Part shown: positions 1,289 to 32,290 of the stretch, one piece after another
How positions within the stretch are numbered: the first letter of the stretch is position 1
Layout: every line of letters begins with the position of its first letter
DNA from: Macrostomum lignano
Taxonomy: Eukaryota
DNA length: 35,366 bases
NCBI GenBank assembly: GCA_002269645.1
Contig: NIVC01004771.1
Location: 1-35,366 of the forward strand
Direction: 5' to 3'
Translations under genes and position numbers: made by a program
Notes under the pieces: model-generated
Database searches by the model: none
What the model saw: the letters and a program-made list of their open reading frames with translations, nothing else
Told to the model about the DNA's origin: nothing

Positions 1289-2391
1289 CCCAGCGTTGTC
1301 ATGGTGACAACAGTGTACCAGAAGGCCGCTGGTATTGATACAAAGCCTGTTTTAGGCTGATTCTTCTCTGCATAATACATCACGGTAGCGAAGATGATGA
1401 CTGCCATTGTCATGGAGAACAATAAAAAGCCCAATTCGGAAACGCACGACTTCAAAGTGTAGCCCAGAATTCGAAGTCCCATGGAGTGCCTGGAAAACTT
1501 GAAGATGCGAAATACTCGAAAACCCTCAGCGTGACGAAAGCTCCGCTCAGGTCCTTATTATCCGGCATGAACAGTCCGATATAATAAGGCAGATAGCCAC
1601 GATATCGATGACACTCATCACTGCGCGCATTTGCTTCAGCCGCTCCGGGGCCGCGTACAGCCTGGCTAGGTATTCCACAGTGAAGATAAGCACACAGGCC
1701 GTGTCCAAGCAGAAGAATGCCTTGGTGAAGCGGTCTCCGCAAGCCAGCACAAGGTTGGTGCCGGGCTCAACTCCGCACGGGATTGTCTCAAACACGTTAG
1801 CGAGAACGGATACGGCAATGAAGAAGCCCGTCACGTAGTATATTACCAACGCAGTCGTCGAAGACTGGGGATTCTCGAACGCGCGCCAGAGCTTCTCCCG
1901 AGGCGTACTGTGCGGCATGGCGTTCTCGGCATCGGAGTCCTTGTCGTCAAACAGGCGCTCGTTATTCTCCCGCTTGCGATCCCTGTAGTCCTCGTAGCAA
2001 CAGTCGCCCATGATGTCCGGCATGATGCCGAAGAAGGCCAGCTCCTCATCGTAGGCCATGATGCACTCATTCTTGGGATAGTGCAGCCTGCCAGTGCGGT
2101 AGTAGGCCAGGATGTGGCGGAACAGGTCCGGGTCTCGGTCGAAGAAGTACTGCTTGCTGTCCTCATCGTAGAAGTACTCCTTCTCATCGCTGCCGAGCAG
2201 AGTGTCCGGGAACTTCTCCAGCGTGTTGCGCCACGTGACAAACTTGCGCCCGGAGACGCTGATGACCAGCTTCTCGTCCGATTTGTGATCCTCATCTCGC
2301 AGCGGGGCGGCGGCATCGGGCCCTGGGCCACCGGCACCCAGCCTATGGCCGCCGCCCTGGCAAAGGGAAGCCACGCAGCCACGGCGGCCAT
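1289..2391 (-). CDS. Shal: Shal/Kv4 voltage-gated K+ channel, first coding exon (N-terminus, T1, S1-S5, pore up to the first G of GYG); three -1 frameshifts in this assembly; remaining exons lie outside the window
   Basis: Starts [18 protein letters not shown] (Kv4 KChIP-binding N-terminus). T1 domain with the Kv4 Zn motif HX5C...CC (HYPKNEC...GDCC). After correction S4 reads [17 protein letters not shown], then [11 protein letters not shown] and [17 protein letters not shown], ending at donor GG|GTAGTT (1289/1288), the usual Kv4 intron position. The pieces sit in ORFs 1843-2391, 1547-2509, 1452-1742 and 1285-1482. Confidence 0.95.
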
Positions 2392-5149
2392 GCGCTGTCG
2401 TCGCTCGGTTCGTAATTAAAAAAATAATCACCCTGTCCTGCCTTTCGTTCTTACTGTCTGCTTTGCTGGCTTGTTTTCTTCTACGTCGACTCTGGATACA
2501 CTTGGGCAAAGCGCTACAAGTGTGGCACTGCTCCCGTTAGCTGAATCTTCAGTGAGAACCTGCTAGGAACGTTACTTTCCTGACTGCGCGCTCACTTCCT
2601 CCGGCAATTTTTCTGACGAAATTGGGCCCGGCTCTATAAATTGCTTTCGCGATACTTTGAGCACTCGCTTTTAAGAATATTAGAAAACTGTAGCGCGCCG
2701 CGATGCGGCTGAAGGAAGCGGTTGAACAGCCGGCGTGAGGAGTTGGCCAGAGGAGAGGAGAGCGCTAGAGATTATAGAGAGAAAGGTCTGCAGTGCAGAT
2801 AGAAGAGATCTCCGTTCTCCCATTGGTTGGCCAACTATAGCTAGGCTGCATCCCTAATCTCCCTAACGCAGATTGGGTGGGTGGTTGGGAAACGAATCCC
2901 AGAAAGTTATACCGTAGGATCAAATAAGATCCGCGCAAATTTAATTTGAAAAGACTAAGACTGAAAATCTTTGCGACTCATGCAAACTAATGGTTTAATA
3001 TACGAATATGCAACATGTACCTGACTACGAGGCAAAATAATTATTGCCTCCTTAAATGCTCCAAAGAATTCTGGCCCCGTAGATCCCTTTGTCACTTTTC
3101 TATTGTAGAAGCTGCAAGCATCATCCCATACTGTTACGAGAGCGTTTCAGTGGCAATTAGATGCTTCTACCAGAATAACTACCTAAGGTAATAGCCAGAT
3201 TTACTTAACTTGCGCTGATAAATAAACAAACGGAGGACGGAGCTAGGACTTCGGAAACATTTCAAAGGCTGGAGCTCTGCAGTTTTCCGCTTAAACTTCC
3301 CTTAAAGCAACTTATTAATAATAAAATATGAGCACAGTTCCCCGTTCCGAGTTTCTCCGATTTACTCTGCAGTTTCAAGTTCATTTTTAGGCTGACTGCC
3401 AATCTGCTTCTTAAGTGAAACTTCTTATTAGCCAGATTTCAAAGTTTTTATGATGGATACGCTTTACATTCGCTCAACGATACCTAAATACATCTTTGGT
3501 GACTTTGTTCGCGGCCGATCTTGAAAGGGGTGTGCCACAGGCTGAGGCTGCAGGAAGCAAAATATTGAAAGGGCGACATCTCCATGCTGCAAAGCATCCC
3601 ACCCATAAAAAATGGGAGGAGCGGTGCAACACAATCACTGGCCATTATACAATCGAAGACGATTGCAGTACATTGACATCATTGAATGACTAAAATTAAG
3701 GAATAAAACTCTGTTGAGGAAACACTATTGTATATGTTATTATTTAGCCTCGAATGTTACCTTAAACTAATAAATAGAATCAAACTAAACTTCAGACGGC
3801 GGTGTTATTGTGCGAACAATTCACTCAATATTAAAGCTTTCTTAGAAAAAACGAAATTTTCAAATTATAAACCAAACAACACTAACTCATGCACCTTTTT
3901 TTAATTCCTTACTTTTCTTCGTTAGTCGTTAAAGCTCGTTCAAAGTTTAGTAAATAACATTTAGGCGCTCTTTCAAATATTATAGTATTACAAAACTCGA
4001 GTACGATCGTACTTATAATGCATAAATTGACATATGCAAAATTGCCTTCTACTCTTGAATTATTTTTAAATACACTGAAATATATTGGCCAAACAGGCTT
4101 CTTGCCTGAGCCAAACTTACTTACTACTACTAACTAAAAAGCAATAGACTAGGCCTAATAATACACATGTCACAATTACAATTTAATAAATCAAAGTAAA
4201 AGTTTCATCCCAATCCATAGAAAGGCAGGAAAACTGTTCAAACTGACAAAATTTTAACCTCCGCTTTAAAATCACACCTTTGTGTTTAAATTGAAACCTA
4301 AGCCTCGAAGACTAGCACCATCACCACCTGGCATTTTTTGGAACAAAAAACCTAGGACATAGGGTAGGGTAGGGTAGGCATTTTAAGAATATTTTAACCC
4401 ATCACTTATTTAGTATTAATAGCCTTTTTATCATAACTTTTATAATAAGAATTAAAAAACTATTTAATAATTAGAGTCAAAACCAAAAAATCAGTGACAG
4501 TGGGATACAAGGCCAAAATAGGTATATTTATAAGACATTAAATTAGAAATTATTAATGCAAATAAGAAAGAGAGATAAGATATTTAACTATTAAAAAGGT
4601 AAGATTGAAAAGTCTACTAGAAAGTAGCAAAAAATGAAGTAAGAATAAAAAGATTAAAGGCAGAGAAAGCAAAAAACAAAATAGGCCTAAGCAAATACAA
4701 GTTTAATAAATACACTAAAAATGACCAAGACATTTCTTGAAAAAAATGATATGTCATATTTTTTTATTTTTTAAGTTTATATTAAAACTGTTGAATTCTT
4801 TATCTTTTTAGGTCTATAACTATATTTAAGTATCTTTTTACTAAAAATATAATTGTAAAAAATAACTATGGCTTAATTTAAAATGATCATATTGTAGAGC
4901 ACCTTTATTATTCTCTAAATCCCACCGCAATCACCAAGTTGTTGTAGGGGGGGGGGTTTGGCTGTAATTCTAGAATTTTATTATATTAGCTTATTGGATT
5001 CGTTATGAACTACTAAAATACGGTGTTACTGAGGCAAGGCTATGGGCTTTCACGTAAGCATGGATTGCCCTGGTAGCGCGCAGTGCCCGAGCGGCAAGAC
5101 ACTGTTCAGCTAGGGGGAGAGGGGGGGTGATTAAGTCCTAAAGCAGCGT

Positions 5150-11625: not shown

Positions 11626-11825
11626 TTTTAGAGTAATCTAGAGTCACTTCTTTTCTATTTTACCTGTATGTGCTGGGTCTCTGCGTGCGTATCCGTGTGC
11701 TTGTGCAACTTCAGTGGCAGTGGAATGTGAACTAGCTAACCAAATAACCGTCACAACGCGGGTTGATCATCTGCGTAGCCAGAACATCATCCGACATCGA
11801 CTTCCCGACAAAACCAAACCGACAG

Positions 11826-12365: not shown

Positions 12366-12511
12366 TATTGTGCGACTCGTGCTTCTGAATGTCCATTTGT
12401 GAACATTTTTGTGGCTGAATATTAGATATCATTTTTCTTGAGTGCAAATTTATTTTATTTTTTAGTAGTAGCAAAGCAACTCTATAAAAAAGATAAACAG
12501 GATAGGCAGAT

Positions 12512-12968
12512 TCTCAAGCACTGATGGAGCGGAGAGGCTGACTCTCAAGACTCTCAAGCACTGATGGAGCGGAGAGGCTGACTCTCAAGACTCTCAAGCA
12601 CTGATGGAGCGGAGAGGCTGACTCTCAAGACTCTCAAGCACTGATGGAGCGGAGAGGCTGACTCTCAAGGACTCTAAAGGGAGCGGAGAGGCAGACTCTC
12701 AAGCACTGATGGAGCGGAGAGGCTGACTCTCAAGAACTCTGAAGGGAGCGGAGAGGCAGACTCTCAAGCACTGATGGAGCGGAGAGGCTGACTCTCAAGG
12801 ACTCTGAAGGGAGCGGAGAGGCTGACTCTCAAGCACTGATGAAGCGGAGAGGCTGACTCTCAAGGACTCTGAAGGGAGCGGAGAGGCAGACTCTCAAGCA
12901 CTGATGGAGCGGAGAGGCTGACTCTCAAGGACTCTGAAGGGAGCGGGGAGGCAGATTCTCAAGCACTG
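12512..12968. repeat. Minisatellite: 40-bp units changing into 65-bp A/B dimers (core CTCTCAAG...GAGCGGAGAGGC)
   Basis: A = CTCTCAAGCACTGATGGAGCGGAGAGGCTGA (31 bp), followed by a 9-bp stub in the first copies; later copies alternate with B = CTCTCAAGGACTCTGAAGGGAGCGGAGAGGCAGA (34 bp). Confidence 0.93.
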
Positions 12969-14207: not shown

Positions 14208-14949
14208 AATATGACCATCTAGTTTGAGACATGGCCATCCAGTTTGAGACATGGCCATCCAGTTTAATACATGGCCATCCAGTTTGAGACATGGCCATCT
14301 AGTTTGAGACATGGCCATACAGTTTAATACATGGCCATCCAGTTTGAGACATGGCCATCCAGTTTGAGACATGGCCATCCAGTTTGAGACATGGCCATCC
14401 AGTTTGAGACATGGCCATCCAGTTTGAGACATGGCCATACAGTTTAATACATGGCCATCCAGTTTAATACATGGCCATCCAGTTTGAGACATGGCCATCT
14501 AGTTTGAGACATGGCCATACAGTTTAATACATGGCCATCCAGTTTGAGACATGGCCATCTAGTTTGAGACATGGCCATCCAGTTTGAGACACGGCCATCC
14601 AGTTTAATACATGGCCATCCAGTTTGAGACATGGCCATCTAGTTTGAGACATGGCCATCCAGTTTGAGACATGGCCATACAGTTTGAGACATGGCCATCC
14701 AGTTTGAGACATGGCTATCCAGTTTGAGACATGGCCATCCAGTTTGAGACATGGCCATACAGTTTGAGACGTGGCCATTCAGCCTTAGACATGGCCATAC
14801 AGTTTGAGACGTGGCCATTCAGTTTGAGACATGGCCATACAGTTTGAGACGTGGCCATTCAGTTTGAGACATGGCCATACAGTTTGAGACGTGGCCATTC
14901 AGCCTTAGACATGGCCATACAGTTTGAGACATGGCCATACAGTTTGAGA
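14208..14949. repeat. 20-bp minisatellite (ACATGGCCATCCAGTTTGAG), ~37 units
   Basis: Tandem units with palindromic core ATGGCCAT; variants TTTGAGAC and TTTAATAC; source of the MAMSQTGWPC ORFs. Confidence 0.96.
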
Positions 14950-16273: not shown

Positions 16274-16356
16274 CTAAATGCTTTCGATGTCCTTGTAGTA
16301 CTGCTCCAGGTCGGCCTTCAGCTTGCCAAGATTGTCCTTCTTCTGCTGGAGCTCCT
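16274..16356 (-). CDS. Tm: Tropomyosin terminal exon, distal alternative (exon 9-like)
   Basis: ACAG|(E)ELQQKKDNLGKLKADLEQYYKDIESI*; 83 nt, phase 1, the canonical size and phase of a tropomyosin last exon. Confidence 0.85.
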
Positions 16357-17076
16357 CTGTGGTTATCGAGTTTATGAAATTAGCATTATAATTATAAAGT
16401 AAAGCATTTTCCGAGCTATGCTCAACTATGCTCAACGTTTGAGGTAGCAGAAGGTGGTAAGGCCGCACTGTTTACGTGTTAAACTTCTATAATAAATTTG
16501 AATTTGTCCTCGATTTAGGAAGGGACAAATTGTTAAAATAAAACACAACAGCCAAGCTACTATTGTAAACAATAGAGGAAAAGTACATAACAACGAGGGG
16601 TTCCCGGAATGTATTTATGGTGAACGGCAGAATGTCAAAACGAGCTGAAATGCAAGCGAGCTAAATCGACCAGAAATGATTCAGGGCCATAGGATCAAAG
16701 GACGGCCGAATGGAACTTCAGTCTGGCAACACCGAATCGTTTAATAAAAACTTTTGCTGTTTTACCATTTAATACTCTCGTAGAATTGCAATGAGTTGTG
16801 GCTAAACATTTCACCTCATCCGGACATTCCTGCCGTTCACATGCAGTAAGCACAGTCAGGAGAATTTGCAACACCCAATCGTACAGACACATTGACATCG
16901 ACGCAAAAAAGAACTGATCTGGTTGTCAGCAACGCAATGCACGGATAGATGCTACTGTCTGTAAGTAGTATAGAACGAAAACATTCAGCACAGAGACAAG
17001 GATGGACAGTATTTTTTAACAGCTAGCTAGTACTACCAGTACTACTAAACAAAGAGCTGCACTAGTAGTAGTATAG

Positions 17077-17162
17077 TTAGGCCGCATATTTCACGGCCTG
17101 CAACAGTTGATCCAAGTCGCGTTTGAGTTTAGCCACCAGCTGGTGCTGCTGCTCAAGTCTGG
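17077..17162 (-). CDS. Tm: Tropomyosin terminal exon, proximal alternative (exon 9-like)
   Basis: TTTGCAG|(A)RLEQQHQLVAKLKRDLDQLLQAVKYAA*; 86 nt, phase 1; heptad pattern aligns with the distal exon (LK.DL.Q). Confidence 0.75.
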
Positions 17163-17424
17163 CTGCAAATGCAAGGAAATTGTCGGAAAGTTTGCCAATG
17201 GAGGAATCTCTGAGAACAGAGCGATCGGTTAGTCCATTGGTTCGTTGATAAGTGCAAAGCTCAACATATTTTTGCATAAGCATGGGTGAACTCGCGAGTC
17301 TTTTAATGTGATTCATAAATTCATTCTAATTCTATAGAACTATTCTCTAAGCAGTAGATTATACGGTAAATAAGGCGGTACGGTTACAAAAATTTCTTCA
17401 AATGATATGCACGCCTGGATCCAC

Positions 17425-17730
17425 CCAGCCTACCTGGTTCCTCATGGGGTATCATCTACCTGTCATCCAACCTACCTGGTTCCTCATGGGGATCATCTAC
17501 CTGTCACCCAACCTACCTGGTTCCTCATGGGGATCATCTACCTGTCACCCAACCTACCTGGTTCTTCATGGGGTATCATCTACCTGCCATCCAACCTACC
17601 CGGTTCTTCATGGGGTATCATCTACCTGTCATCCAACCTACCCGGTTCTTCATGGGGTATCATCTACCTGTCATCCAACCTACCCGGTTCTTCATGGGGT
17701 ATCATCTACCTGTCATCCAACCATCCAACC
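17425..17730. repeat. 42-bp minisatellite (GGGGTATCATCTACCTGTCATCCAACCTACCCGGTTCTTCAT), ~7 units
   Basis: Tandem units; the 14-aa periodicity of the overlapping ORFs confirms 42 bp. Confidence 0.93.
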
Positions 17731-18552: not shown

Positions 18553-18591
18553 GGTTAGGGTTAGGTTTGGGGTTAGGGTTAGGATTAGGGG
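18553..18591 (+). repeat. Short degenerate interstitial (TTAGGG)n
   Basis: GGTTAGGGTTAGGTTTGGGGTTAGGGTTAGGATTAGGGG immediately before the 30-bp array. Confidence 0.7.
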
Positions 18592-19920
18592 TATTGCTGA
18601 GACTTCTAGGCTGACGGAGGGATTGTTGAGATGTCAAGGCTCACGGGGGGGATTGTTGAGATGTCAAGGCTCACGGGGAGATTGTTGAGATGTCAAGGCT
18701 CACGGGGGGGGGATTGTTGAGATGTCAAGGCTCACGGGGGTATTGTTGAGATGTCAGAGCTCATGGGGGGATTGTTGAGATGTCAAGGCTCACGGGGGGA
18801 TTGTTGAGACTTCTAGGCTGACGGAGGGATTGTTGAGATGTCAAGGCTCACGGGGGGATTGTTGAGAAGTCAAGGCTCACGGGGGGATTGTTGAGATGTC
18901 AAGGCTCACGGGGAGATTGTTGAGATGTCAAGGCTCACGGGGGGGATTGTTGAGATGTCAAGGCTCATGGGGGATTGTTGAGATGTCAAGGCTCACGGGG
19001 GATTGTTGAGATGTCAAGGCTCACGGGGGTATTGTTGAGATGTCAAGGCTCACGGGGGGATTGTTGAGATGTCAAGGCTCACGGGGGGATTGTTGAGATG
19101 TCAAGGCTCACGGGGGTACTGTTGAGATGTCAGAGCTCATGGGGGGATTGTTGAGATGTCAAGGCTCACGGGGGGATTGTTGAGACTTCTAGGCTGACGG
19201 AGGGATTGTTGAGATGTCAAGGCTCACGGGGGGATTGTTGAGATGTCAAGGCTCACGGGGGGATTGTTGAGATGTCAAGGCTCACGGGGGGATTGTTGAG
19301 ATGTCAAGGCTCACGGGGGTACTGTTGAGATGTCAGAGCTCATGGGGGGATTGTTGAGATGTCAAGGCTCACGGGGGATTGTTGAGATGTCAAGGCTCAC
19401 GGGGGGATTGTTGAGATGTCAAGGCTCACGGGGAGATTGTTGAGATGTCAAGGCTCACGGGGGGGATTGTTGAGATGTCAAGGCTCATGGGGGGATTGTT
19501 GAGATGTCAAGGCTCACGGGGGGATTGTTGAGATGTCAAGGCTCACGGGGGTATTGTTGAGATGTCAAGGCTCACGGGGGGATTGTTGAGATGTCAAGGC
19601 GCACGGGGGGATTGTTGAGATGTCAAGGCTCACGGGGGGATTGTTGAGATGTCAGAGCTCACGGGGGGATTGTTGAGATGTCAAGGCTCACGGGGGGATT
19701 GTTGAGATGTCAGAGCTCATGGGGGGATTGTTGAGATGTCAAAGCTCACGGGTGGATTGTTGAGATGTCAAGGCTCATGGGGGATTGTTGAGATGTCAAG
19801 GCGCACGGGGGGATTGTTGAGATGTCAAGGCTCATGGGGGGATTGTTGAGATGTCAAGGCTCACGGGGGGATTGTTGAGATGTCAAGGCTCATGGGGGAG
19901 TCGCTGAGATGTCAAGGCTT
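18592..19920. repeat. ~30-bp minisatellite (GGATTGTTGAGATGTCAAGGCTCACGGGGG), ~44 units, between tropomyosin exons 8a and 8b
   Basis: Tandem units with variable G-run; recurrent variants GACTTCTAGGCTGACGGAG and CAGAGCTCATG indicate block duplications. Confidence 0.97.
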
Positions 19921-20260: not shown

Positions 20261-20330
20261 CTTCGGTCTCGTCAATTTCTTTTTGCCGGTTGGCCGCCTC
20301 CCGCTCGGCGGACTCTGCCCTCTCCTCGGC
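20261..20330 (-). CDS. Tm: Tropomyosin exon 8 (8a)
   Basis: TTCAAG|AEERAESAEREAANRQKEIDETE+g|GTAACG; 70 nt; matches [23 protein letters not shown]. Confidence 0.92.
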
Positions 20331-20645: not shown

Positions 20646-21063
20646 AGCGCCAGCACCAAGGGGCGCCAGCACCAAGGGGCGCCAGCACCAAGGGGCGCCA
20701 GCACCAAGGGGCGCCAGCACCAAGGGGCGCCAGCACCAAGGGGCGCCAGCACCAAGGGGCGCCAGCACCAAGGGGCGCCAGCACCAAGGGGCGCCAGCAC
20801 CAAGGGGCGCCAGCACCAAGGGGCGCCAGCACCAAGGGGCGCCAGCACCAAGGGGCGCCAGCACCAAGGGGCGCCAGCACCAAGGGGCGCCAGCACCAAG
20901 AAGCGCCAGCACCAAGGGGCGCCAGCACCAAGGGGCGCCAGCACCAAGGGGCGCCAGCACCAAGGGGCGCCAGCACCAAGGGGCGCCAGCACCAAGGGGC
21001 GCCAGCACCAAGGGGCGCCAGCACCAAGGGGCGCCAGCACCAAGGGGCGCCAGCACCAAGGGG
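20646..21063. repeat. 17-bp minisatellite (GCGCCAGCACCAAGGGG), ~24 units
   Basis: Nearly perfect array with one variant unit (AAGAAG) near 20899; overlapping ORFs are repeat artefacts. Confidence 0.97.
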
Positions 21064-21160
21064 CTTTACCCCCTAGCCATTAAACTCTAAAACCTGAGTA
21101 GGTAATACGATCGCGTCCCCTGAACCGATGCAAAAGTCAGGTAAGTAACCAAGCGCTCAC

Positions 21161-21223
21161 CTCTTTCAGCTTCAGAGTGAGATCCATGATGAGCTTCTCG
21201 TTGCTTTCTTCCTTCTGGACTGA
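21161..21223 (-). CDS. Tm: Tropomyosin exon 7
   Basis: TTTCACAG|SVQKEESNEKLIMDLTLKLKE|GTGAGC; 63 nt, phase 0 to 0; matches [21 protein letters not shown]. Confidence 0.93.
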
Positions 21224-21574
21224 CTGTGAAAGGAATTGGTTGAGGGTAGAATGGCGGAATTAGAGATCGCTCTGTCCTGAAAATAAATTTTCTTACTCAC
21301 ATGGCGGTAAAAAGCTCTTGCAAGGCATGCAAGGTTAAACAAAACAAAGAATGATAATCCTCTTTGAACTTGATCGCATGCTTTCGCAGAAATGGGATTT
21401 TAACATGAAATTTGCTGAACTTGGCTTGCAGATCCATGGACTGCGTGGCCGAATCGCTATTTTTAGCTTTCAAGCTTAAATCACTTCAATTGAATCACTG
21501 ATCCCAATGCAATGCAGTTCGTACATGCACAGGCGAATACAATTGATCCCCTATTCTCGATGTAGATTAGCAAT

Positions 21575-22982
21575 CCATGTGATGCCCTAATCCTCTGGAT
21601 AGATTAGCAATTCAACTGATCCCTAATCCTCTGGATAGATTAGCAATTCAACTGATCCCTAATCCTCTGGATAGATTAGCAATTCAACTGATCCCTAATC
21701 CTCTGGATAGATTAGCAATTCAACTGATCCCTAATCCTCTGGATAGATTAGCAATCCAACTGATGCCCTAATCCTCTGGGATAGATTAGCAATCCATCTG
21801 ATCCCTAATCCTCTGGATAGATTAGCAATTCATCTGATACCCTAATCCCCAGGGTAGATTAGCAATCCATTAGATCCCTTAATCCCCAGGGTGATTAGCA
21901 TTCCATCTGATCCCCTAATCTTCAGGATAGATTAGCAATTCAACTGATCCCTAATCCTCTGGATAGATTAGCAATCCAACTGATGCCCTAATCCTCTGGG
22001 ATAGATTAGCAATTCAACTGATCCCTAATCCTCTGGATAGATTAGCAATTCAACTGATCCCTAATCCTCTGGATAGATTAGCAATCCAACTGATGCCCTA
22101 ATCCTCTGGGATAGATTAGCAATCCAACTGATGCCCTAATCCTCTGGATAGATTAGCAATTCAACTGATCCCTAATCCTCTGGATAGATTAGCAATCCAA
22201 CTGATGCCCTAATCCTCTGGGATAGATTAGCAATCCAACTGATGCCCTAATCCTCTGGATAGATTAGCAATTCAACTGATCCCTAATCCTCTGGATAGAT
22301 TAGCAATCCAACTGATGCCCTAATCCTCTGGATAGATTAGCAATTCAACTGATCCCTAATCCTCATGATAGATTAGCAATCCATCTGATCCCCTAATCCT
22401 CAGGATAGATTAGCAATCCATCTGATCCCCTAATCCTCATGATAGATTAGCAATCCATCTGATGCCCTAATCCTCTGGATAGATTAGCAATCCATCTGAT
22501 CCCCTAATCCTCAGGATAGATTAGCAATACATCTGATCTCCTAATCCTCGGGATAGATTAGCAATCCATCTGATCCCCTAATCCTCATGATAGATTAGCA
22601 ATCCATCTGATCCCCTAATCCTCAGGATAGATTAGCAATCCATCTGATGCCCTAATCCTCTGGATAGATTAGCAATCCATCTGATGCCCTAATCCTCTGG
22701 ATAGATTAGCAATCCATCTGATGCCCTAATCCTCTGGATAGATTAGCAATCCATCTGATCCCATCTAATCCTCAGGATAGATTAGGATTAGATCTGATCC
22801 CCTAATCCTCAGTAAAGATTAACAATCTATCTGATCCCCTAATCCTCATGATAGATTAGCAATCCATCTGATCCCCTAATCCTCAGGATAGATTAGCAAT
22901 CCATCTGATCCCCTAATCCTCAGGATAGATTAGCAATCCATCTGATCCCCTAATCCTCAGGATAGATTAGCAATCCATCTGA
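21575..22982. repeat. 36-38-bp minisatellite (GATAGATTAGCAATTCAACTGATCCCTAATCCTCTG), ~38 units, tropomyosin intron
   Basis: Two subfamilies: 5' CAATTCAACT/CTCTG and 3' CAATCCATCT/CTCAG. Each unit contains the inverted pair GATTAG/CTAATC and a CCCTAA hexamer. Confidence 0.97.
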
Positions 22983-23108
22983 TTTTCCCATCCACGTATC
23001 ACCAGAAGAGGCTAAGTACAGCAGACTACGAGACCCATGTCATGCAGGTGTTCTCAACTGCAAAAGCGATGAGCTCCAATCCACTACAAAACTGAGAATT
23101 TTTCCCAC

Positions 23109-23217
23109 CGTTGATGCCGCACGCAGGCGACTGGAGGCCGCCAGCTGCTCTGAGATTTCACGCGATCCCAGCCGAATCCCGGCTGCCCGGAGCGCCTCTT
23201 CCAGTTCGAGCACCTTG
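23109..23217 (-). CDS. Tm: Candidate alternative tropomyosin exon 6 (6b); 3' boundary uncertain (23142 or 23109)
   Basis: CCAG|c-KVLELEEALRAAGIRLGSREISEQL aligns residue for residue with KVKELRDELNLVTIHLKSLEISEAK and with invertebrate [25 protein letters not shown]. The canonical 76-nt end has only a GC donor; a GT donor lies 33 nt further on. Confidence 0.5.
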
Positions 23218-23521: not shown

Positions 23522-23668
23522 CTTTGCCTCGCTGATCTCTAACGATTTCAAATGAATAGTGACCAGGTTCAGCTCGTCACGGAGCTCTTTGACCTTCTTC
23601 TCGGCCGCGTCTGAGCGATCCTCGGCCTTGGCCAGCTGCTCTTCGGCCAGTTGAAGCTTCCTTCGAAC
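23522..23668 (-). CDS. Tm: Tropomyosin fused exon 5/6
   Basis: TTAAG|VRRKLQLAEEQLAKAEDRSDAAEKKVKELRDELNLVTIHLKSLEISEAK|GTTTGG; 147 nt = 71+76. Confidence 0.93.
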
Positions 23669-24271
23669 CTTAATAGGACAAGTCGGTCGGCCCAGGTGGC
23701 CAAGATTGTTAGTAAATTGTGTGCAGAGCAGCAGCGCACTGGAGCAAAATCAACTCAGAAATGCAGGCATGCATTTAACCTAGCTAAACATAGGCTTAGA
23801 CTGCTGATAGTGTAGTACTCGGCTGCAAGGTTGCAAGCGTAGTTACGCTGTCACCATAGCAACAGCAATAATTGCAGGAGGATTTTGGGCACTACACTAC
23901 ACTAAGGCATGTACATATCTGTGCCTTGTGAATCGCACCACAATTCACCGGCCAATTTTATGACAAGCCCAAATGAATGTGGCCAAGAAGTTCGGATTTC
24001 TTAAAGAAAACGGGCATTTAGGCAGAGGCAGCGATCGTCAGCGTGCTAAAAATGTATTGAAGCAATGAATAGAGCGTAAATGAGTGCAACAGGTACTTTA
24101 ATTCAAGCATTTTCTCTGATACCTGTCTAAAACAGCCTTATTCAACAGTCAGGGAGAATGAACTGCAAATCAATCTGGAACATTCAGCACCAACATGCAG
24201 CAACCCGCATGCCAAATCCAGATATTGCAACACTCTAGAAAGGCAACCTGTCAGCAAAACTGAAGCGGCAA

Positions 24272-24364
24272 TTATCGCTCTCCGCTGTTGCTGCTGCTGC
24301 CTCGCTTAGCAACGGTTGCTGGGGCTGGGTCTCGTCGGGGGGCAGGCGACTGCGTCGTTTCAGC
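24272..24364 (-). CDS. Candidate alternative terminal exon after tropomyosin exon 4 (low-complexity 30-aa tail)
   Basis: CTATAG|AETTQSPAPRRDPAPATVAKRGSSSNSGER*; the phase-0 acceptor fits the phase-0 end of exon 4; GC-rich island in an AT-richer intron. No transcript evidence. Confidence 0.35.
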   Translation of the reverse strand, partial: AETTQSPAPRRDPAPATVAKRGSSSNSGER

Positions 24365-24650
24365 CTATAGCGCACACAATTCGGGACGGCAAAGTTTGCT
24401 TTGAATCTGACTGTAGCCTGCATGCCTACAGACATTTAGAATAAACAATAAATATGCAGCACGCGCGGAAGCGCGCTTCAGTGAGCGCATCTTAGATTGT
24501 AATTAATAAAACAAAACAGGGCGGAGATTTGAATTACTAGATGTCCAAGAAATCATTTAGCAACTAAGTAACTAAGATATTTGCTAGCTAAATAGGTGAA
24601 AGGTAAAATTAATAAAAAATCCCACTATAACAGAGATAAGCCGTCATCAC

Positions 24651-24768
24651 CTCCTCCAGATTGGTCTCTGCGTCGCTAGCAGCGTCTGTGGCCTCGTTGA
24701 CAAGCTGCTCCAGCTGGTTGATGCGGCTGTCATCAATGTTCTGCCGATTTTCCAGCACTTTGCGAGCC
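24651..24768 (-). CDS. Tm: Tropomyosin exon 4
   Basis: AACAG|(R)ARKVLENRQNIDDSRINQLEQLVNEATDAASDAETNLEE|GTGATG; 118 nt, phase 2 to 0. Confidence 0.94.
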
Positions 24769-25184
24769 CTGTTTATTATTATTACTGTTATTAATCACAC
24801 TGCGTGCATGCATGAGCGCCTAAGTGAAACAGGCTTGGCAGGTGGATGCTAATGCCAAAAGAAAAGTTATCTTAATTTCAAAGCACATGTTTTCAAAAAA
24901 CCTATTCCTCAACTAAATTAACAAATTAGAATTATTGGACAACATAAAAAATTTTACCAAAATGATATTTTAAAAAAAAATTTCCTCTGACTTCAAACTT
25001 TTCATTTTGATGAATTTGATGGTATAAAAACTAAAATTGAGAATAGGTAATGCATGACTGCTTATATAATTTTTAATACAAAAAAGTTTAAAAATGCAAA
25101 AATATATTCAGACATTAGGTGTATGTGGATAACATAAAAAATAGATTTATATATTTACTTGCTAAAATATAAATTAATATTTAC

Positions 25185-25318
25185 CTTTCACTTTCTTCTG
25201 CTGTCTTGTTTGCTTCTTGAAGCTTCTGATTGGTATCGTTCAATCGACCTTCAGTCTGTTCAAGCTCATCTTCTAGAAGCTGAATTCTTCTAGCAAGACT
25301 TTGGACTTCTGTCTCTGC
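25185..25318 (-). CDS. Tm: Tropomyosin exon 3 (first common exon)
   Basis: TTCTAG|AETEVQSLARRIQLLEDELEQTEGRLNDTNQKLQEANKTAEESE(R)|GTAAAT; 134 nt; tropomyosin signature RRIQLLE.EL. Confidence 0.96.
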
Positions 25319-25635
25319 CTAGAAAAATTGATAAAAAACATGTTTATAATTAATATTTTACCATTTGAAAAACACTTTAAAGGGAAGAAAATACAACTAA
25401 ATGTTAATTTATGTGTAATAAAGTTGTTCAATACACTTAAATATAAAGTTATTTTGCTAAGAAAAAAGTTAACGTCATAAAGGTGAGAATAAATATTTGC
25501 TGAAATGAAAAACTAGAGATCTAACAGCCACAGATAGCCGATAAGCACAGTCAAATATTTTATACTATAGTAAAATGAGGTAAAATGGATGAGCTAAAAG
25601 AAACATGCATTGTTTTGCAAAATTGCAGTAATTAC

Positions 25636-25785
25636 CGAGTTGCGAAGCTCAACTTCCATCTTTAATTCTTCCTCTTTACGCTCAAGTTCATCAGTGACTT
25701 TGTCTAAATCGTTTTTTAGGCCTTGCATTTTTTGTTTTAAAACAGACAAAACACCTTGTGTTTGGTTGTTCTTCTCGGCCGCCAT
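25636..25785 (-). CDS. Tm: Tropomyosin short first exon (exon 1b-like, LMW isoform; 254-255 aa product)
   Basis: MAAEKNNQTQGVLSVLKQKMQGLKNDLDKVTDELERKEEELKMEVELRNS|GTAATT; 150 nt, phase 0; contains the VLKQKMQ.LK motif. Confidence 0.9.
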
Positions 25786-26356
25786 ATTGTTCTTTTTATA
25801 TTTTGGTATTGGATATGAAAGCTAATAGCGTTTGTATGTGAAAATGCAGGGTATATGTACAATGTACTGTTCAGCCAGTACAAAAAATGAAGGAACACGT
25901 GTGAAGTTAAATCGACGCCGGTTTATATAAATAAACAAATCATAACAATCATAACAGATAACTACGATATTTTAGCAACCAATTATGAACATCGTTTAAG
26001 TGCTGCTGGTTTTTTAAAGACGTATTTGTTGTCTATAAGTACAAATCTAATTATTTTGTTATTCAATTCTATAACACATTCTCATATTTGTTTTTTCATT
26101 CTACACGCACCAGAATTCCTATCCAGATAATGAACTAGCACTTAAAACTCATCTAAATGTATGAAAATACGTACATGTAGTTTTCATTTTTCTGAATTTA
26201 TCGCAACAGCCAACAAACAGGTACGATCGTTTATTAAGTTTTAATAACTATTTTTTCTACAGAAATAGTTGTTCGCCTGCTTGTGATCCATCAGTTAGGG
26301 TATTATTGTTTTCAGTACATGTTACGTACGTTTATCATTACTAAATATTATCCTAC

Positions 26357-27469
26357 CTTTCGTAGCGATTGCGAAATCATGTTTTGAATCTCGGCACCAA
26401 TGATGGAAAACTTGATCATTGTGCTTGAGTTGAGATTTACTGCTGAAAGGCCGCGCATAATCACACCCTTCTCGTCCACTTGACCCCTGGAGTCTGTGGA
26501 CATTGTCGATGCAGTGTCGCTATCGGAACAACTTCCATAGTCCGAGAACAATGGGTCTTTGCTGAGCAGATAGGCCAGATCAGAAGCCGCTGAATCTCTG
26601 CGTTTTTCCTTCCAATTGTTGGCCCAATGTGCGCCCCCTGCCGCGCCTCCGTAGCTTGAGGCGCCAAGCGACTCCATTTTTTCTGGCGTCGATGGCGCTC
26701 CTTCTGGATCGGGCCGCTGCTGATTGCGCGGGCACAGCCGATCACCGCCACGACGTCGGGGCGGTCGACGCTTACGTTTGCTGCCGCCGCCAGCTGAAGA
26801 AGACGAGAACGGTGACGCATTGTGCGGCTTGACTGACCGACCGGCGGCGCTGGATGCCGACGGAGCAACCGAGACGCCCAAATTCGGCTGGCGCTGCTGT
26901 TGGCGATAGCAACGGTCGTAGTAGTCCGGATCGAACGTTATGGTGAAGACAGAGTTGTCTGAGGTCACGTGACGTTGCACTGGAGGCGGCGAGCGTCTAG
27001 AACGAGATCGAGCAGCGGCGACGGCTGCTGCTGCCGCTGCTGTAGCGCTGGGCGAATACGGCCGCTCAAACAGCTGCTCTTGTTGTTGTTGCTGTTGCTG
27101 CAGCAGCTGCTGCTGCAGTGGCAAACTGTTTGAATGGCGCTGTTTTCGATGCGGTGGCTGGTACAGAGATTGGCTGCTGTGATACTGCTGCTGCATCAGG
27201 CCTTCGGCTTTAAAGCGGCTCTTGATGCCTCCGCTTGTCGACTGTTGGGCTCCGGAGCATCGCTGCTTCTGCTTCTCCTGGACGTGGGCCCAGTGTCGGT
27301 TAGAGGATTCGCGCGTCGAATTCGATGCAGCCGCAGCTGTCAGGGACGTCGACGAAGATGAAGATGGCGGCAGCGAGTTTGACGGTAGAAGGAAAAGAAA
27401 TTTGTCCTCGGCTGGGCGCTGGAATTCGAATTGTGAAATCTGATTTGTCTGAACACAATATTTGTCTGC
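26357..27469 (-). CDS. Tm: Large low-complexity alternative 5' exon of tropomyosin (371 codons; Q/S/A/R-rich)
   Basis: Frame is open from acceptor CGTTAG| at 27469 through ORF 26348-27196 to ...TMIKFSIIGAEIQNMISQSLRK|GTAGGA. The phase-0 donor is compatible with exon 3 (AETEV...); 1113 nt is divisible by 3. Confidence 0.7.
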
Positions 27470-27544
27470 CTAACGTGCAGCTGAATGTACTTAACAATCT
27501 AATGAATTAAGAAACTTGAAGACAGAAAAGGTCAACAGACTTAC

Positions 27545-27623
27545 TCGAACTTTCTCCGCCTCAGGCCCTCGATGATGCGACCGCTTCTCACGAGCCGAGT
27601 CGAACTGGCGATCGGATGAGGAT
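27545..27623 (-). CDS. Candidate upstream exon B of the long tropomyosin isoform
   Basis: Pyrimidine-rich acceptor GATCAG|, (R)SSSDRQFDSAREKRSHHRGPEAEKVR, perfect donor |GTAAGT; 79 nt, phase 2 to 0; 75-nt intron to the large exon. Confidence 0.45.
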
Positions 27624-27919
27624 CTGATCGAGGATGGCAGGAATGAGTAAGACAGTTTGCATATTCAGTAGGCAATCCGCCAAGTCTCTGTCATCATAAG
27701 TTCACTGGATTTAAGGGCAACGCGGCGACATTGAATCAGCATTCAGCGACGACGTATTATGTACGAGTATTATACTTTCGAGATGAAATTGATACACAAG
27801 AAAAGTTATGTACTTTTTTACTGTAATCTTACCATGAGGCAGGGATTTTGACCGAAGTCAAAATGCCCTATATACATGTAGGCCACAAATAAACCCAGAT
27901 TCTCATTTAAACAATTGGA

Positions 27920-28231
27920 CATTTTATTACACCTGCTCTAATGGCAGATGTGCAACCGATAGCTCAGCCGCAGCTATTGCGCGGCGCATCTGAAGGCTGC
28001 GTACGGCTGTTCAGTCCAAGGACTGGGGGTCGCCACACACACCCTCAATTACTCCAGCTACGAAATACGGTACCCATTTTACAGCTGGGTGAACTGAAGC
28101 AATGCAGAGTTAAGTGTCTTGCTCAAGGACACGTTCCGGACAAGTTCTCGTTCCGAATGGGTCGATAGAACGAATCCCCGACATTTAAGTCGTGAGTCCG
28201 ACGCTAAGTCTAACCACTAGGCTGCAACCCC
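27920..28231 (-). mobile_element. tRNA-derived CORE-type SINE, copy 1
   Basis: Minus strand: A-box-like GCAGCCTAGTGGTTAG head, then GTGTCCTTGAGCAAGACACTTAACTCTGCATTGCTTCAGTTCACCCAGCTGTAAAATGG, which resembles the MIR CORE domain; body shared with copy 2; ends in GTAATAAAAT. Confidence 0.8.
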
Positions 28232-28571
28232 TATCCAATATTGGACTGCATTGAAAATGTTGTTATCCAATAGTCCCATATTTTACGCTTTGATCTTGGT
28301 TTATTTAAAAATAACGACAACCATCGTGAAACAATGCATTCTTTTATACGCGTAAGCAAAACGGATTTTTACGGGTGGTTACGTGTTTTCGTGACGCCAT
28401 TATTTGAGAAGGCCCTTGAAGCACTATTTGCACCTATATTTACCTGTGGGAATCTTTTAGCGAACACCAGCTTTAAGGGCTCCAAAGCAGTAACGGGTCG
28501 CATCCGGGTTGTCTGCTAGCAATTTTAATTGTCAATGACCAGGAATATCCCTCCCAACAGGCTTAACTCAC

Positions 28572-28642
28572 CTTCCAAGAGCGCCATCCTTGTCCAACTT
28601 GACCGTCAGTATCTTCCTGACGGTTGGCTGCTGGTGATCCAT
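28572..28642 (-). CDS. Candidate start-codon exon A of the long tropomyosin isoform
   Basis: MDHQQPTVRKILTVKLDKDGALG+ag|GTGAGT; strong donor, and phase 2 matches exon B. A different phase-0 reading of the same donor is also possible. Confidence 0.35.
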
Positions 28643-31493
28643 GAGTAAGCAGTCGCCAAACTTCTGACGCGCCCGCGGTCCTGAGCGACTTTTCTAGCAG
28701 TGCCCTGGCATCGATATTGCAAAAAGAGAAAGAAATGACAACAAAAAGTCTGGCCCCGGCCTGTTGCTGCAATGCAGCTTTTCTCTCCTCCTTGCGGCGC
28801 CGCGGAGGGGAAGCTACGCAGGAGAAGGGAATAGGCTAGACTGCACGCTGCAGTGCGCAATGGACCAGGGGAAGGTCACAGTCCGGACAGGGGATTGCGC
28901 AGTGCCAGCACCGGGATCAAGGAATGCTCGATCGTCTGCTGACCCCCCCCCTCCAGCCCCAGCCCTTCACCAGTTGGCTGTAGGTGGAGACGGAAAGTCA
29001 AGGACGCTGCAGGATGCTGAAGCTGCATGGGCGAGCGAGCCAACCAAGCGTGCGAATGTTGGTACAGGTCGTAGAGAGGAGGCGGCAGCAGCTGAGGTCT
29101 GCACTGTTACTGGAAGGAATTTTCCTGCAGACTATGGGGTTTGGGCAGTCCGAATACCGATGCGTCACTGCACAGTCTGCGTCACTGCAGCTGCTGCATG
29201 CTACTGTTCCCGATTGCGAAGCCGCTTGCTTGCATGGGGATTGAATTCGGGCAGTGCGCCCTGCTGGGGAGGGTCATCCCAAATTGGTAGATCCCCGCCT
29301 TAGCTTAATGGGAGAATTTGGTAGCTAATTGCAGATTTTTTCGGATAAAATGACTCGAAACCTATTTATTGACGAACGACGGTGGGCACCAATGTTGATC
29401 CAACGGATGCGGGAACACTGGGTAAGATCTGACCGTTTGTTAACCTAGCTACTTAAAACAAATATGCAATATATGAGACAGAACCCTTAGTTCTTACCGG
29501 CCTCCATCTCATTTCTAAGAAAATCAAGTGTAACGCCTTTTTACCTCAGCTGCCTATGGTAAATTTCCACGCGTAAAATCAAAAGCGCCCACTTAACAAT
29601 CGGTCATCTGACAGCATCCACTTTAAAGTACAATGCCAGCTATACTGTAAGTGGCGCGCAGCAGCCAGACAAAAAGCAGAATAATAGAATTGCAGCGAGA
29701 GCAGCAGCTGTAGAAAGCGATCCATTATTCCCCATCGTGCATTTAAGCTATAGCGACTGTGCATGTTACGTCTATGGATACAGCCAGCGCGACCTATACT
29801 GTCTCTGAATTTTACTGAACTGTGTAACCGCCAGTTCAATCCGATCCATCACTAGTCAGACCGCAGCAGCCTGCGCGGCCTCATAAGGGAGGTCAAAAGT
29901 GGCTTCTTCAGCTATACACAACCGCGTCTGTTGAACACAATGACAATAAAAATTCCTCATTTAACTGGCAGCGCGGCGTCCAAAAGTTCAGCCCGTCTGG
30001 CTTCTGGCCAATTTGTTGGGCAAAAACTTTAGCTAAGGCTAAGGCTGGAATGATTAAAAAATTCCATAAGCAGACAGAAAGAATTGCAGCCCTGTGCATG
30101 TCCGCATTGCTGGGAAAGTAAACAAATTGGAATATTCTCTAAGGGGTAAAGGAAATTCGCTTTTAAGCTACTGTTAGTAGCTTCCGTTCCAGAAAATTCC
30201 TGAGATTTAGTTGAGGCACCTTTTAATAACCAAGGAGCACTTGAGCTATTCGTTATTTTCCTCTGCCAAAGTATTCAGTAAATAGATTCTCTTTGACAAT
30301 GTGAGATTTCGACTTTATGAAACGCCTCCGTTACAACAAAACCCTCCAAAGTCCTGGTTCAAATCAATCTTGAAAGGTTAAACGATCAAAGTACAATTAA
30401 TTGCTATTACTATGCATATACATAATATATCTGTGTAACGAGAAATAAAATGGAATTTCTACACAATACTCCGCAAGTATATTTGCTCAAAATTATGCTT
30501 AAAAGCTGAAACATACTACTTTACTCGTACGCACAAATGTAATAAACGTACAATGCACGAGTCTAGAAGTGCGTTTAAATATAAAAAAATGCCATTATAA
30601 TAATCAGACAATGACATACTACTAACCTATAATCAACAATGAAAACAAATACCGTACGAAGAAACAAGTGTTTAAATTTAACTATAATAAAAGTTGCTGA
30701 GTTGAGAACTGTGAAAATTAAGAGAGCATTAGGAACCTGATTTTATCTTGCAGCGATACGGCACGTTAAAATGTGTCATCCAGTTTAGTACTTATTTTTC
30801 AATACGATCACACTATACCAACTATACCAGCTATACCAACTGTAACGTTACTGTTTACTAACTATCATAAATACAAAATACTAATTCATATAATCCTGGG
30901 CTGGATGTTCGTCCCGAATCGGGGAAAACCGGCTGAGTCCGGTTTCCTCTTGCCCCTTGTGCCCCTCTCCGCCCCCTTGGCCTGGCCTCCAAAATAGAGC
31001 TGGATAGGCGATACCCTTGTGGCTTGCAGCCCTATAGGAGGATTTGTGCGGTTGCCTACCTGATAGGAGACTCGCCCTCGGATACAAGCCTTCCAGACTC
31101 ACTCCAATTATCAAGCCATTTCCGTAGACTTTAGGATATTCCCTGCTCTCGGACCGCTTTCTAACATATTTCATTCCAATTCTTTTTTCGCGCACTCCCG
31201 GGATTTGTCTGCTGGGTGGTGGCCTGAGTGGACTCGGTCCTTGCACCGTCCCTGATTCCACTAATATTGGGTTGGCGGTGTCTTAGTCCATAAGGCTTAG
31301 GTTAGTAGCTCCAATATGCCCCCTGGCCTAGACTTCGGGGTCCAATCAGGCGGGTATCTCGGGCTTTATGCCCCTGGTAGTGCCCCTCAGCGGCAGAGCC
31401 CCTCTCAGGGCTGATCCGCGGTAGCCCCCAGCTTCCCACCCCCGTTTAACAACAATCATATAATCGTAGTTCATAGAGCGCTTTGGATCACGG

Positions 31494-31770
31494 AAGGGTA
31501 GCACACATGCACCAGAAAGGATCAGGAAGGGTAGCACACTCGCTCCAGAAAGGATCAGGATAGGTAGCACACATGCACCAGAAAGGATCAGGAAGGGTAG
31601 CACAGTCGCTCCAGAAAGGATCTGGAAGGGTAGCACACTCGCTCAAGAAAGGATCAGGAAGGGTAGCACAGTCGCTCCAGAAAGATCAGGAAGGGTAGCA
31701 CACTCGCTCCAGAAAGGATAGGGAAGGGTAGCACGGTCGCTCCAGAAAGGATAGGGAAGGATAGCACACT
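31494..31770. repeat. 33-bp minisatellite (GGGTAGCACACTCGCTCCAGAAAGGATCAGGAA), ~8 units
   Basis: Tandem units; 11-aa periodicity in overlapping ORFs; lies just downstream of the C2orf76 stop codon. Confidence 0.92.
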
Positions 31771-31906
31771 CCAAAAAGGGTCAAGAAAAGATTGAGGATT
31801 AAAAGGAAACGCAAGTCTAATTAACTGAAAGATGAAATTGTTGAAAGAAAACAATAGACGCATTTGATAACGCAGCCGTCAGTAGTTGAGATCGCCATCC
31901 CCAAAG

Positions 31907-32290
31907 CTACCACTTGAAATCCGTGACTGGGTTGGCTTTGTACGCGCAATATTCGCTCTGATTAAAGTAGGACAGCTCCGCCTCGTGAACTAAGCCGCAG
32001 CTGGACAAGATGGCCGAATCGTCGCTCAGAGTCAGCGCCTCATCATTGTCAACATTGACAACTAGATCGTTAGGCTTGGCAGCCTGGGGTAGGCAATGAA
32101 TTTTCAAAGTGTCAAAGTTGAACGATTTAAAAGTTGGCGGCAGCGACCTGCTTGTTGCTATGGCGTTGCGAATAGCGACTTTCAGTTCGGCTACAGTCAG
32201 CTTATCTAGGTCAAGCGAGTGCAGCACCAAGTTGCGCACATTCTTGAACTCAAAGGATCGAATCAAGCGGACAGTCAACGTTGACGTCAT
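31907..32290 (-). CDS. C2orf76: UPF0538 protein C2orf76 homolog (DUF2340), 127 aa, single coding exon
   Basis: MTSTLTVRLIRSFEFKNVRNLVLH...LPPTFKSFNFDTLKI...KPNDLVVNVDNDE...ELSYFNQSEYCAYKANPVTDFKW matches family motifs TVRLIRSFE, LPPPF...YD.LKI and YK.NP..W; the second Met of ORF 31907-32407 is taken as start. Confidence 0.93.
   Translation of the reverse strand: MTSTLTVRLIRSFEFKNVRNLVLHSLDLDKLTVAELKVAIRNAIATSRSLPPTFKSFNFDTLKIHCLPQAAKPNDLVVNVDNDEALTLSDDSAILSSCGLVHEAELSYFNQSEYCAYKANPVTDFKW

Follow-up and report, generated by a model that had tools for sequence, protein, structure and literature searches.

A candidate aTm1-type head exon in a tropomyosin gene of Macrostomum lignano and its homologs in other invertebrate tropomyosin loci

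Tm1-I/C (aTm1) of Drosophila is among the very few structurally defined adaptors that sit directly on the kinesin-1 heavy chain, and it has been treated as a fly speciality. Contig NIVC01004771.1 of Macrostomum lignano raises the question of whether a protein of the same kind is made elsewhere. The contig was analysed at its full length of 35,366 nucleotides (the window), and it carries a tropomyosin gene on the minus strand at about 16-28.6 kb. An original prediction, made from the letters of the sequence, had proposed that a large open exon of this gene (the head exon) gives an atypical tropomyosin with a long disordered head, a short coiled coil and a low-complexity tail. Our answer is a qualified yes. 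On balance, the head exon is probably a third, large alternative 5' coding exon of the gene, and the isoform that it begins would be an aTm1-type adaptor on the tail of the kinesin-1 heavy chain.

The head exon and its junction with exon 3

We read and translated the region 24200-28700 and placed the exons by tblastn with human, fly and mollusc tropomyosins; all coordinates of the gene refer to the minus strand. The head frame is open over 27469..26357, which is 1113 nt or 371 codons without a stop, and the remaining five frames contain 8-14 stops each. From base composition the probability of such an open frame is about 1.5e-6, and 371 codons were reached in 0 of 2000 shuffles. Counted from the acceptor TTCCAG/CGC, the exon covers 26357..27418 and 354 codons, with its earliest in-frame ATG at 27196. 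The commonest residues are S (60), A (37), Q (36) and R (31) among the 371, so the Q/S/A/R-rich exon described by the original prediction was confirmed, together with its basic patch KRKRRPPRRR at 26779..26750.

In the exon, a disordered region rich in S, A, Q and R precedes a conserved module of about 120 residues. The basic patch lies 11 residues 5' of the motif RPDPEG (26699..26716), which was placed by alignments and by comparison of loci. The motif DPLFSDYG (26534..26557) is followed by an acidic, serine-rich stretch, and the exon ends in the junction helix LNSSTMIKFSIIGAEIQNMISQSLRK (26357..26434). The frame ends in ...TMIKFSIIGAEIQNMISQSLRK (also written ...KFSIIGAEIQNMISQSLRK and ...NLNSSTMIKFSIIGAEIQNMISQSLRK). 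Right after 26357 stands the donor AAG/GTAGGA in phase 0. Exon 3 begins at 25318 with GCA GAG, also in phase 0 and with an alanine as its first residue (AETEVQSLARRIQLLEDELE...), so the predicted fit of a phase-0 GT donor to exon 3 was found as described.

Exon 3 (25185..25318, 134 nt, AETEVQSLARRIQLLEDELEQTEGRLNDTNQKLQEANKTAEESE-R) corresponds to tropomyosin residues 81-125 and is 58% identical to human TPM1 (E 4e-10). Exon 4 (24651..24768, 118 nt, ARKVLENR...ETNLEE) corresponds to residues 126-164. Jointly the two exons give 84 codons, which is the coil length that had been predicted. Between the head exon and exon 3 lies the alternative first coding exon 1b (25636..25785), with 50 codons, its own ATG and a phase-0 donor (MAAEKNNQ...VELRNS). 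It is the first exon of an ordinary short tropomyosin; it and the head exon exclude each other. Both finish in phase 0, and exon 3 opens in phase 0. Apart from the length of the head, every coordinate and sequence statement that the original prediction made on these elements was borne out.

A Pfam scan of the head exon found no family that covers the module, and its sole match, JetA, was below threshold. A cytoplasmic intermediate-filament protein was rejected, since the Pfam scan of the head gave no intermediate-filament domain and the downstream coil is tropomyosin by tblastn and by the PDB search. The long disordered head of the original prediction agreed with structure prediction. With a 10-sequence alignment, AlphaFold2 (AF2) gave the window module a per-residue confidence (pLDDT) mostly <50 outside the C-terminal helices. 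The last 23 head residues were predicted as a confident helix (pLDDT about 95), with a weaker helix immediately before it. When the end of the head was modelled as spliced to exons 3-4, AF2 returned a single unbroken helix from NSST... onward, with pLDDT 96-98 at the junction. Over both models the junction helix has pLDDT 94-98. The model thus predicts that the helix of the head continues into exon 3.

The junction peptide was also used to search the PDB. The aTm1 chains 7BJG, 7BJS and 7BJN ('SD21996p') were at the top, above all classical tropomyosins, with E 3e-21 for the aTm1 chains and 5e-13 or weaker for the classical ones. The alignment spans residues that are unique to the fly isoform, the window side being LNSSTMIKFSIIGAEIQNMISQSLRK/AETEV, i.e. 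LNSSTMIKFSIIGAEIQNMISQSLRK/AETEVQSLARRIQLLEDELE, and the last 26 head residues of the window align with Drosophila aTm1 residues 256-281 (fly numbering derived from the construct boundaries in PMC8247599). A hidden Markov model (HMM) of the 26-residue helix was built from 16 sequences with the window and Drosophila left out. The fly peptide scored 24.9 bits (E 5e-10, Z=1), against 50.6 bits for the window. Among 5000 shuffles of the fly peptide none reached its score, the maximum being 13.7 bits, and classical tropomyosin 26-mers from human, fly, mollusc and the window scored <=3.6 bits. Generic coiled-coil likeness as the cause of the fly match is ruled out by these two controls. The likeness of the junction to Tm1-I/C to which the original prediction had pointed proved essentially right.

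The matching residues include those that matter in the fly. A282 is the first fly residue shared with classical Tm1, residues 262-281 lengthen the coiled coil, and aTm1 259-324 and two kinesin heavy chain (Khc) chains assemble into an antiparallel trimer (PMC8247599). The partner segment is the alternative cargo-binding coiled coil, Khc 855-911. I267, L271 and L279 lie in the hydrophobic core of this complex, and I267A/L271A abolishes Khc binding and oskar localisation (PMC8247599). At the equivalent positions the window has I, I, L, and most homologs have I, L, L. Over a longer series, F264, I267, L271, I274 and L279 of the fly are F, I, I, M and L in the window, and the exon-3 residues L296, L300 and L307 are conserved too. 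Judged by sequence, the junction segment and the kinesin-binding helix specific to the Drosophila Tm1-I/C isoform are homologs. In our own reading, the head helix of the window is nearer to the mollusc-type and flatworm-type sequences than to the fly.

The wider plan of the gene is also that of aTm1. An isoform-specific N-terminal exon lies within the tropomyosin gene in both cases, and its end fits the residue-81 boundary in phase 0 (R281/A282 in the fly, K/A in the window). In both cases a long low-complexity head is followed by a coil-extending helix of about 26 residues and by the coil of exons 3 and 4. A classical low-molecular-weight tropomyosin (exon 1b-type, PF00261) comes from the same gene and has exons 3 onward in common with the head isoform, but it is a coiled coil throughout and forms a parallel dimer that coats actin. 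In the head isoform, its N-terminal overlap region would give way to a disordered stretch of about 300-400 residues and to a helix of another kind.

Homologs in other tropomyosin loci

The head exon recurs in 17 other sequences, from Schistosoma, other flatworm-like loci, an oyster-like locus and further invertebrates. An exhaustive HMMER search with the head against 1.84 billion representative proteins gave 7 matches, all in the last ~70 residues. These include a Schistosoma cluster ('tropomyosin, variant 2', several species) and a Trichobilharzia cluster (NCBI/UniRef names). A profile search added six more sequences and a scan of public contigs added nine more loci; for the locus scan alignment A1 was too divergent, and the narrower alignment A2 was used. 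Two word-indexed protein searches were uninformative. The one with the whole head gave no match, its candidate list (8000) probably being saturated by low-complexity words. The one with junction, coil and tail gave one cestode tropomyosin only, and its index misses most eukaryote tropomyosins, so that absence from it says little. A homology search with the junction peptide had been suggested in the original prediction, and homologs were found in fly aTm1 and in flatworm and mollusc-like loci.

Every homolog is a long open exon that ends in ...[LVI]NS[SGN]T[LM][IL][KQ].[AS]I[IV]..E[LI].N......[KRM]/GT. The exon end ...SL[RK][KRM]/GT was recovered in all searches (HMMER, profile, contig scan) and in the named Schistosoma and Trichobilharzia proteins, and the phase-0 donor is conserved. 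Two upstream elements are common. RP[DE]PEG is present in nearly all homologs, and [DE]P[LI]FSD[YL]G stands in an acidic context, with L, F, S and D of the PLFSDYG motif invariant in the 10-sequence alignment. A K/R-rich patch at or just 5' of RP[DE]PEG was found in the mollusc-like heads and in the heads of L007-L015 and P0002. The window carries all three elements, K/R patch, RPDPEG and DPLFSDYG. These are common to flatworm and mollusc-like exons; the fly was compared over the last ~26 head residues. As an impression of our own, PLFSDYG in its acidic tract loosely recalls acidic aromatic motor/adaptor motifs.

The position in the gene is conserved as well. Of the 13 distinct genomic loci, 11 have tropomyosin exons flanking the head exon on its own strand; these include L004, L006-L012, L014 and L015, with L009 and L011 as copies of one sequence. 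Exons 1a and/or 2 lie upstream and exons 1b, 3 and 4 downstream where the contig extends, and both sides are present in L006, L007 and L012. The exon order is that of the window, and exon 1b stands between the head exon and exon 3 also in L006, L007 and the Schistosoma model P0024. In the mollusc-like L005, no tropomyosin exon was found within 10 kb of the head exon, and its intron is probably longer. Exons 1a and 2 of L010 appear to match those of oyster tropomyosin closely.

The homologs of the head exon are under purifying selection. Between L013 and L014, dN/dS is 0.17 over the whole exon, 0.08 over the last 100 codons and 0.22 over the variable N-terminal part. The corresponding values between L012 and L015 are 0.18, 0.04 and 0.30.

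In Schistosoma (XP_051064558.1; UniRef A0AA85AP20, A0A094ZGE6) the same module, LEPEGE...EPLFSDYGSESDDEDEY...LNSGTLIKMAIIGVELQNVIKVSLRK/AEAEV, lies at the same gene position. Compared with the Q/S/A-rich head of the window, this one is shorter and acidic. These models are automated, with no function attached, and place the exon between exons 2 and 3, sometimes with 1b. The models P0005, P0013, P0015 and P0024 are 486-568 aa long and fuse 1a, 2, head, sometimes 1b, and 3, plus both alternatives of later exons; the order in P0024 is 1a+2+head+1b+3. They are likely annotation artefacts that mask the head isoform. Since predictors merge mutually exclusive first exons, the head exon is swallowed in these models and not recognised.

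aTm1 has been described as 'present in Drosophilidae' (PMC8247599), and whether similar mechanisms act beyond the fly has been called unclear (2026 preprint, bioRxiv 10.64898/2026.08.20.746125). Cho et al. 2016 and Veeranan-Karmegam et al. 2016 aside, we found in the literature no description of the head exon outside flies. The window feature itself joins the known aTm1 kind, and the interesting part is the family-wide conservation with its two extra motifs. The original prediction had suggested that the kinesin/RNA adaptor system is much older than insects, and the exons in Schistosoma and other invertebrate tropomyosin loci support this at the level of sequence. An aTm1-like motor-adaptor isoform is probably much older than flies. 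This holds regardless of the organism of the window, because the Schistosoma tropomyosin genes carry the exon.

Extent of the isoform and rival explanations

The start of the head may be supplied by two further exons. Candidate exon A (28572..28642, 71 nt, ATG at 28642) reads MDHQQPTVRKILTVKLDKDGALGR and ends in phase 2 at the donor AAG/GTGAGT; when it is read through this strong donor, the next codon is TGA. It resembles a shortened tropomyosin exon 1a (KLDKDGALGR; fly Tm1 has KVDKDGALER), and the segment RKILTVKLDKDGALGR is 56% identical to KKMQAMKVDKDGALER of Drosophila Tm1 over 16 aa (E 0.41, weak alone). Candidate exon B (27545..27623, 79 nt, SSSDRQFDSAREKRSHHRGPEAEKVR) has a good pyrimidine tract and the donor CGA/GTAAGT. 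A and B join the acceptor at 27418 in frame and with good splice sites. The head is then 404 aa long; the frame and splice fit of the original prediction stood, and its length of ~421 aa did not. The concatenated model of A, B, head, exons 3 and 4 and tail is 519 aa and stop-free. Exon 2 was not detectable in the window by tblastn, and the gene may have lost the high-molecular-weight isoform.

Other loci suggest another start. In the cestode-like open reading frames (ORFs) a conserved MFSSMYEF... opens the frame about 12 residues before RPEPEG, and L012-L015 have a conserved M[YN]SR[GR]RR at the start of the open frame. A conserved methionine near the frame start suggests that translation usually begins within the exon itself and that the length of the head is free, at about 110-400 aa. 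The conserved core is formed by the final ~100 residues.

One 1.27-kb contig (L001-L003) was found in three sample accessions, of which at least one is a metatranscriptome. Outside flies it is the only direct evidence of a head joined to exon 3, and it is also a short-coil form. Its single complete ORF of 331 aa follows a 5' untranslated region (UTR), with a start codon, a 270-aa head, an exon-3-like coil of 45 aa, 16 residues and a stop. The head has RPDPEG, LLYSDYG and NLNSSTLIKYAIISSELTNIVKQNLRK, followed directly by TESEVLSLAHRIQ..., the exon-3 homolog. It is the closest relative of the window module (51% over 70 aa), and the coil is likewise divergent (SLAHRIQ vs SLARRIQ).

The coil of aTm1 covers tropomyosin residues 81-165, and in the window exon 4 ends exactly at the equivalent of that end (24651). 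A phase-compatible ORF follows at 24364, and L001 stops earlier, after its exon-3 equivalent. For the head isoform, a coil of 84 aa and one of full length are both possible. The candidate tail is an alternative terminal exon at 24272..24364: the acceptor TATAG/G at 24364 opens 30 codons (AETTQSPAPRRDPAPATVAKRGSSSNSGER) in phase with exon 4, with a stop ending at 24272, and ATTAAA lies near 24098. The S/P/R-rich tail of the original prediction was found with its phase, length and stop, but its acceptor is weak, with a poor pyrimidine tract (CCGTCCCGAATTGTGTGCGCTATAG/G), and it has no homolog. A tblastn search of all related loci gave no similarity for the tail, for either candidate exon or for the first 230 aa of the head, which is expected of regions that are disordered. 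The Drosophila low-complexity tail is reported to be limited to Sophophora (PMC7519307). A homologous tail is therefore not expected here, and intermediate-filament-like behaviour may not apply. The N/S-rich tail, which forms cross-beta polymers and which filament assembly requires, defines the fly protein, not the wider family.

In the mechanism that we propose, the head exon would be spliced in phase 0 to exon 3, giving an atypical tropomyosin like Drosophila Tm1-I/C (aTm1), with a disordered head of 280-400 aa, its length set by the start, and exon 1b would give the ordinary short tropomyosin. The last ~120 head residues would present, in order, the basic patch, RPDPEG, the acidic PLFSDYG region, a short helix and a 26-residue amphipathic helix. 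The last of these and exon 3 would form one long amphipathic helix, unbroken into the coiled coil. By homology with aTm1, a single helix chain would insert antiparallel between two kinesin-1 heavy-chain tail chains at the alternative cargo site, and the disordered basic/acidic head would tether cargo, e.g. RNA or ribonucleoproteins (RNPs). The window isoform may, on the same grounds, bind both kinesin and RNA. TRAK/Milton has the same proposed mode, in which a helix docks on the heavy-chain CC4/alternative cargo region with no need of light chains, and it has no sequence relationship with the window protein. TRAK2 forms a parallel four-helix bundle, whereas aTm1 forms an antiparallel heterotrimer (bioRxiv 10.64898/2026.08.20.746125).

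Several points weigh against an aTm1-type adaptor in the window. Support within the window for the junction of head and exon 3 comes from the genome, not from transcripts, and exons A, B and the tail are supported by compatible frames and splice sites alone. The assembly probably has 1-bp indels, as seen in the Kv4 gene described below, so details of short exons could be wrong. The head-specific residues that can be compared with Drosophila number only about 26. The fly helix is kinked at T277 in the Khc complex; the window has Q there (Q-S for T277-Q278 of the fly). The N/S-rich filament-forming tail of the fly, 69 aa long, has no evident counterpart, since the candidate tail is 30 aa, S/P/R/A-rich and without an asparagine run. 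The tropomyosin of the window is 44-58% identical to reference tropomyosins per exon, and this divergence may point to a paralog with its own specialisation. Finally, kinesin binding has been shown only for Drosophila (PMC8247599).

Most of the rival explanations accept the exon and differ in the protein that it enters. The head could be followed by all classical exons, giving a long-head, full-length tropomyosin of ~600 aa or more that may still bind actin and perhaps bridges actin and kinesin. We regard this as possible though rather doubtful. No sequence feature forces an end after exon 4, the weak acceptor of the candidate tail is not conserved, and in the automated Schistosoma models the head runs on into a full coil. 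These models are no evidence, as they merge mutually exclusive exons (1a+2+head+1b+3 in P0024), and the mRNA-like contig L001 ends 16 codons past the exon-3 equivalent. Drosophila aTm1 likewise stops at the exon-4 equivalent (PMC8247599). The same gene models, such as Schistosoma 'tropomyosin variant 2', would also fit a head exon that is an internal cassette between exons 1a/2 and 3 of a high-molecular-weight tropomyosin, with no separate head-first isoform, and the 1a-like exon A upstream in the window is frame-compatible via exon B. This is quite improbable. The conserved methionine near the frame start in several lineages (MFSSMYEF..., M[YN]SR[GR]RR) suggests that the exon has its own start, L001 has a 5' UTR and a start codon without exon 1a/2 sequence, exon 2 is absent from the window, and the Drosophila isoform begins in its own exon.

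The homology may also be right and the function different, with the helix serving homodimerisation, filaments or another partner, and kinesin binding being a fly-specific co-option. One aTm1 surface serves both the antiparallel homodimer and the Khc complex (PMC8247599), and RP[DE]PEG and PLFSDYG, which have no known role in the fly work, point to additional partners. Against this, the Khc site bound by aTm1 is described as evolutionarily conserved (PMC8247599), and the residues conserved across phyla are exactly those of the Khc core. Moreover, the filament tail is young (Sophophora only, PMC7519307) and the helix is old. We consider a function of this kind unlikely, if still worth serious attention. 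That the open frame is due to chance, or is a nested unrelated gene or a pseudo-exon in a tropomyosin intron, is effectively refuted. The sequence is of low complexity, has no annotation and has no exact copy in protein collections, but the open frame is significant, and homologous exons occur in many taxa at the same gene position, under purifying selection and with a conserved phase-0 donor. An alternative first exon that would make an aTm1-type kinesin-1 adaptor is the reading that we retain as the likeliest.

Surrounding sequence and wider meaning

The rest of the tropomyosin gene follows the canonical order. The heptad-repeat exons homologous to tropomyosin residues 81-257 are 3, 4, 5/6, 6b, 7 and 8, all on the minus strand, and those beyond exon 4 were placed by tblastn: exon 5/6 at 23522..23668, the alternative exon 6b at about 23110..23215, exon 7 at about 21161..21226 and exon 8 at about 20261..20330. 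Exon 5/6 contains 'KSLEISE', which in our reading hints at a spiralian, as does the nearer match of the head helix to the mollusc-type and flatworm-type sequences. The canonical C-terminal tropomyosin exon was not found in the window. Coiled-coil-like short ORFs lie 3' of exon 8 at 16280-17320 (-), e.g. one ending in ...ARLEQQHQLVAKLKRDLDQLLQAVKYAA and a stop at 17316..17077, and these may be alternative last tropomyosin exons.

Between candidate exons A and B, at about 27930-28230 (-), lies an element with a tRNA-like start (GGGGTTGCAGCCTAGTGGTTAG...GGGGATTCG), followed by the core '...GAGCAAGACACTTAAC...CAGCTGTAAAATGGGTACC'. It looks like a tRNA-derived short interspersed element of the marine-invertebrate kind; ARAGORN and Rfam made no call on it. 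Micro- and minisatellite arrays are unusually dense in the window, with periods of 5-65 bp and lengths of up to 1.4 kb (47-653, 5882-7095, 9729-10491, 12508-12968, 14211-14949, 17425-17722, 18588-19919, 20647-21064, 21563-22983 and 31485-31771). Two of them, a 37-bp array at 21563-22983 and a 16-bp array at 20647-21064, lie in tropomyosin introns, and the array at 5882-7095 is CT-rich and strongly strand-asymmetric (GC skew -0.86).

Three other genes were found in the window. A Shal/Kv4-type potassium channel gene at 1450-2510 (-) has BTB_2/T1 and Ion_trans domains, and its conserved sequence shifts among three frames (ORFs 1843..2391, 1547..2509 and 1452..1742, the last with LPYYIGL...). From the ORF translations alone, both frame switches look like single missing bases, and they could be assembly indel errors or the mark of a young pseudogene. 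The PIP5K domain of a phosphatidylinositol-phosphate kinase gene at 9300-12365 (+) is split between two exons and carries an A/G-rich insertion. A DUF2340/C2orf76-like protein of 127 aa is encoded by a single exon at 31910-32290 (-).

For the family as a whole, the chances are about even that protostome (possibly bilaterian) tropomyosin genes ancestrally possessed the aTm1 head exon as an alternative exon, with a core module of ~100 residues that gene predictors have missed or mis-merged, and that it is no invention of the Drosophilidae. If this is true, a tropomyosin-derived, light-chain-independent cargo/RNA adaptor of kinesin-1 would be general to many invertebrates, and RP[DE]PEG and PLFSDYG would mark further binding partners. 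The recurrence of the exon also flags a systematic annotation error, in which predictors merge the head exon with exons that exclude it. It provides two new conserved motifs for study and sets the old part of the protein, the helix and its module, apart from the young part, the filament-forming tail. The fly mechanism becomes a testable general one, for RNA or RNP transport in oocytes, neurons or the parasite tegument.

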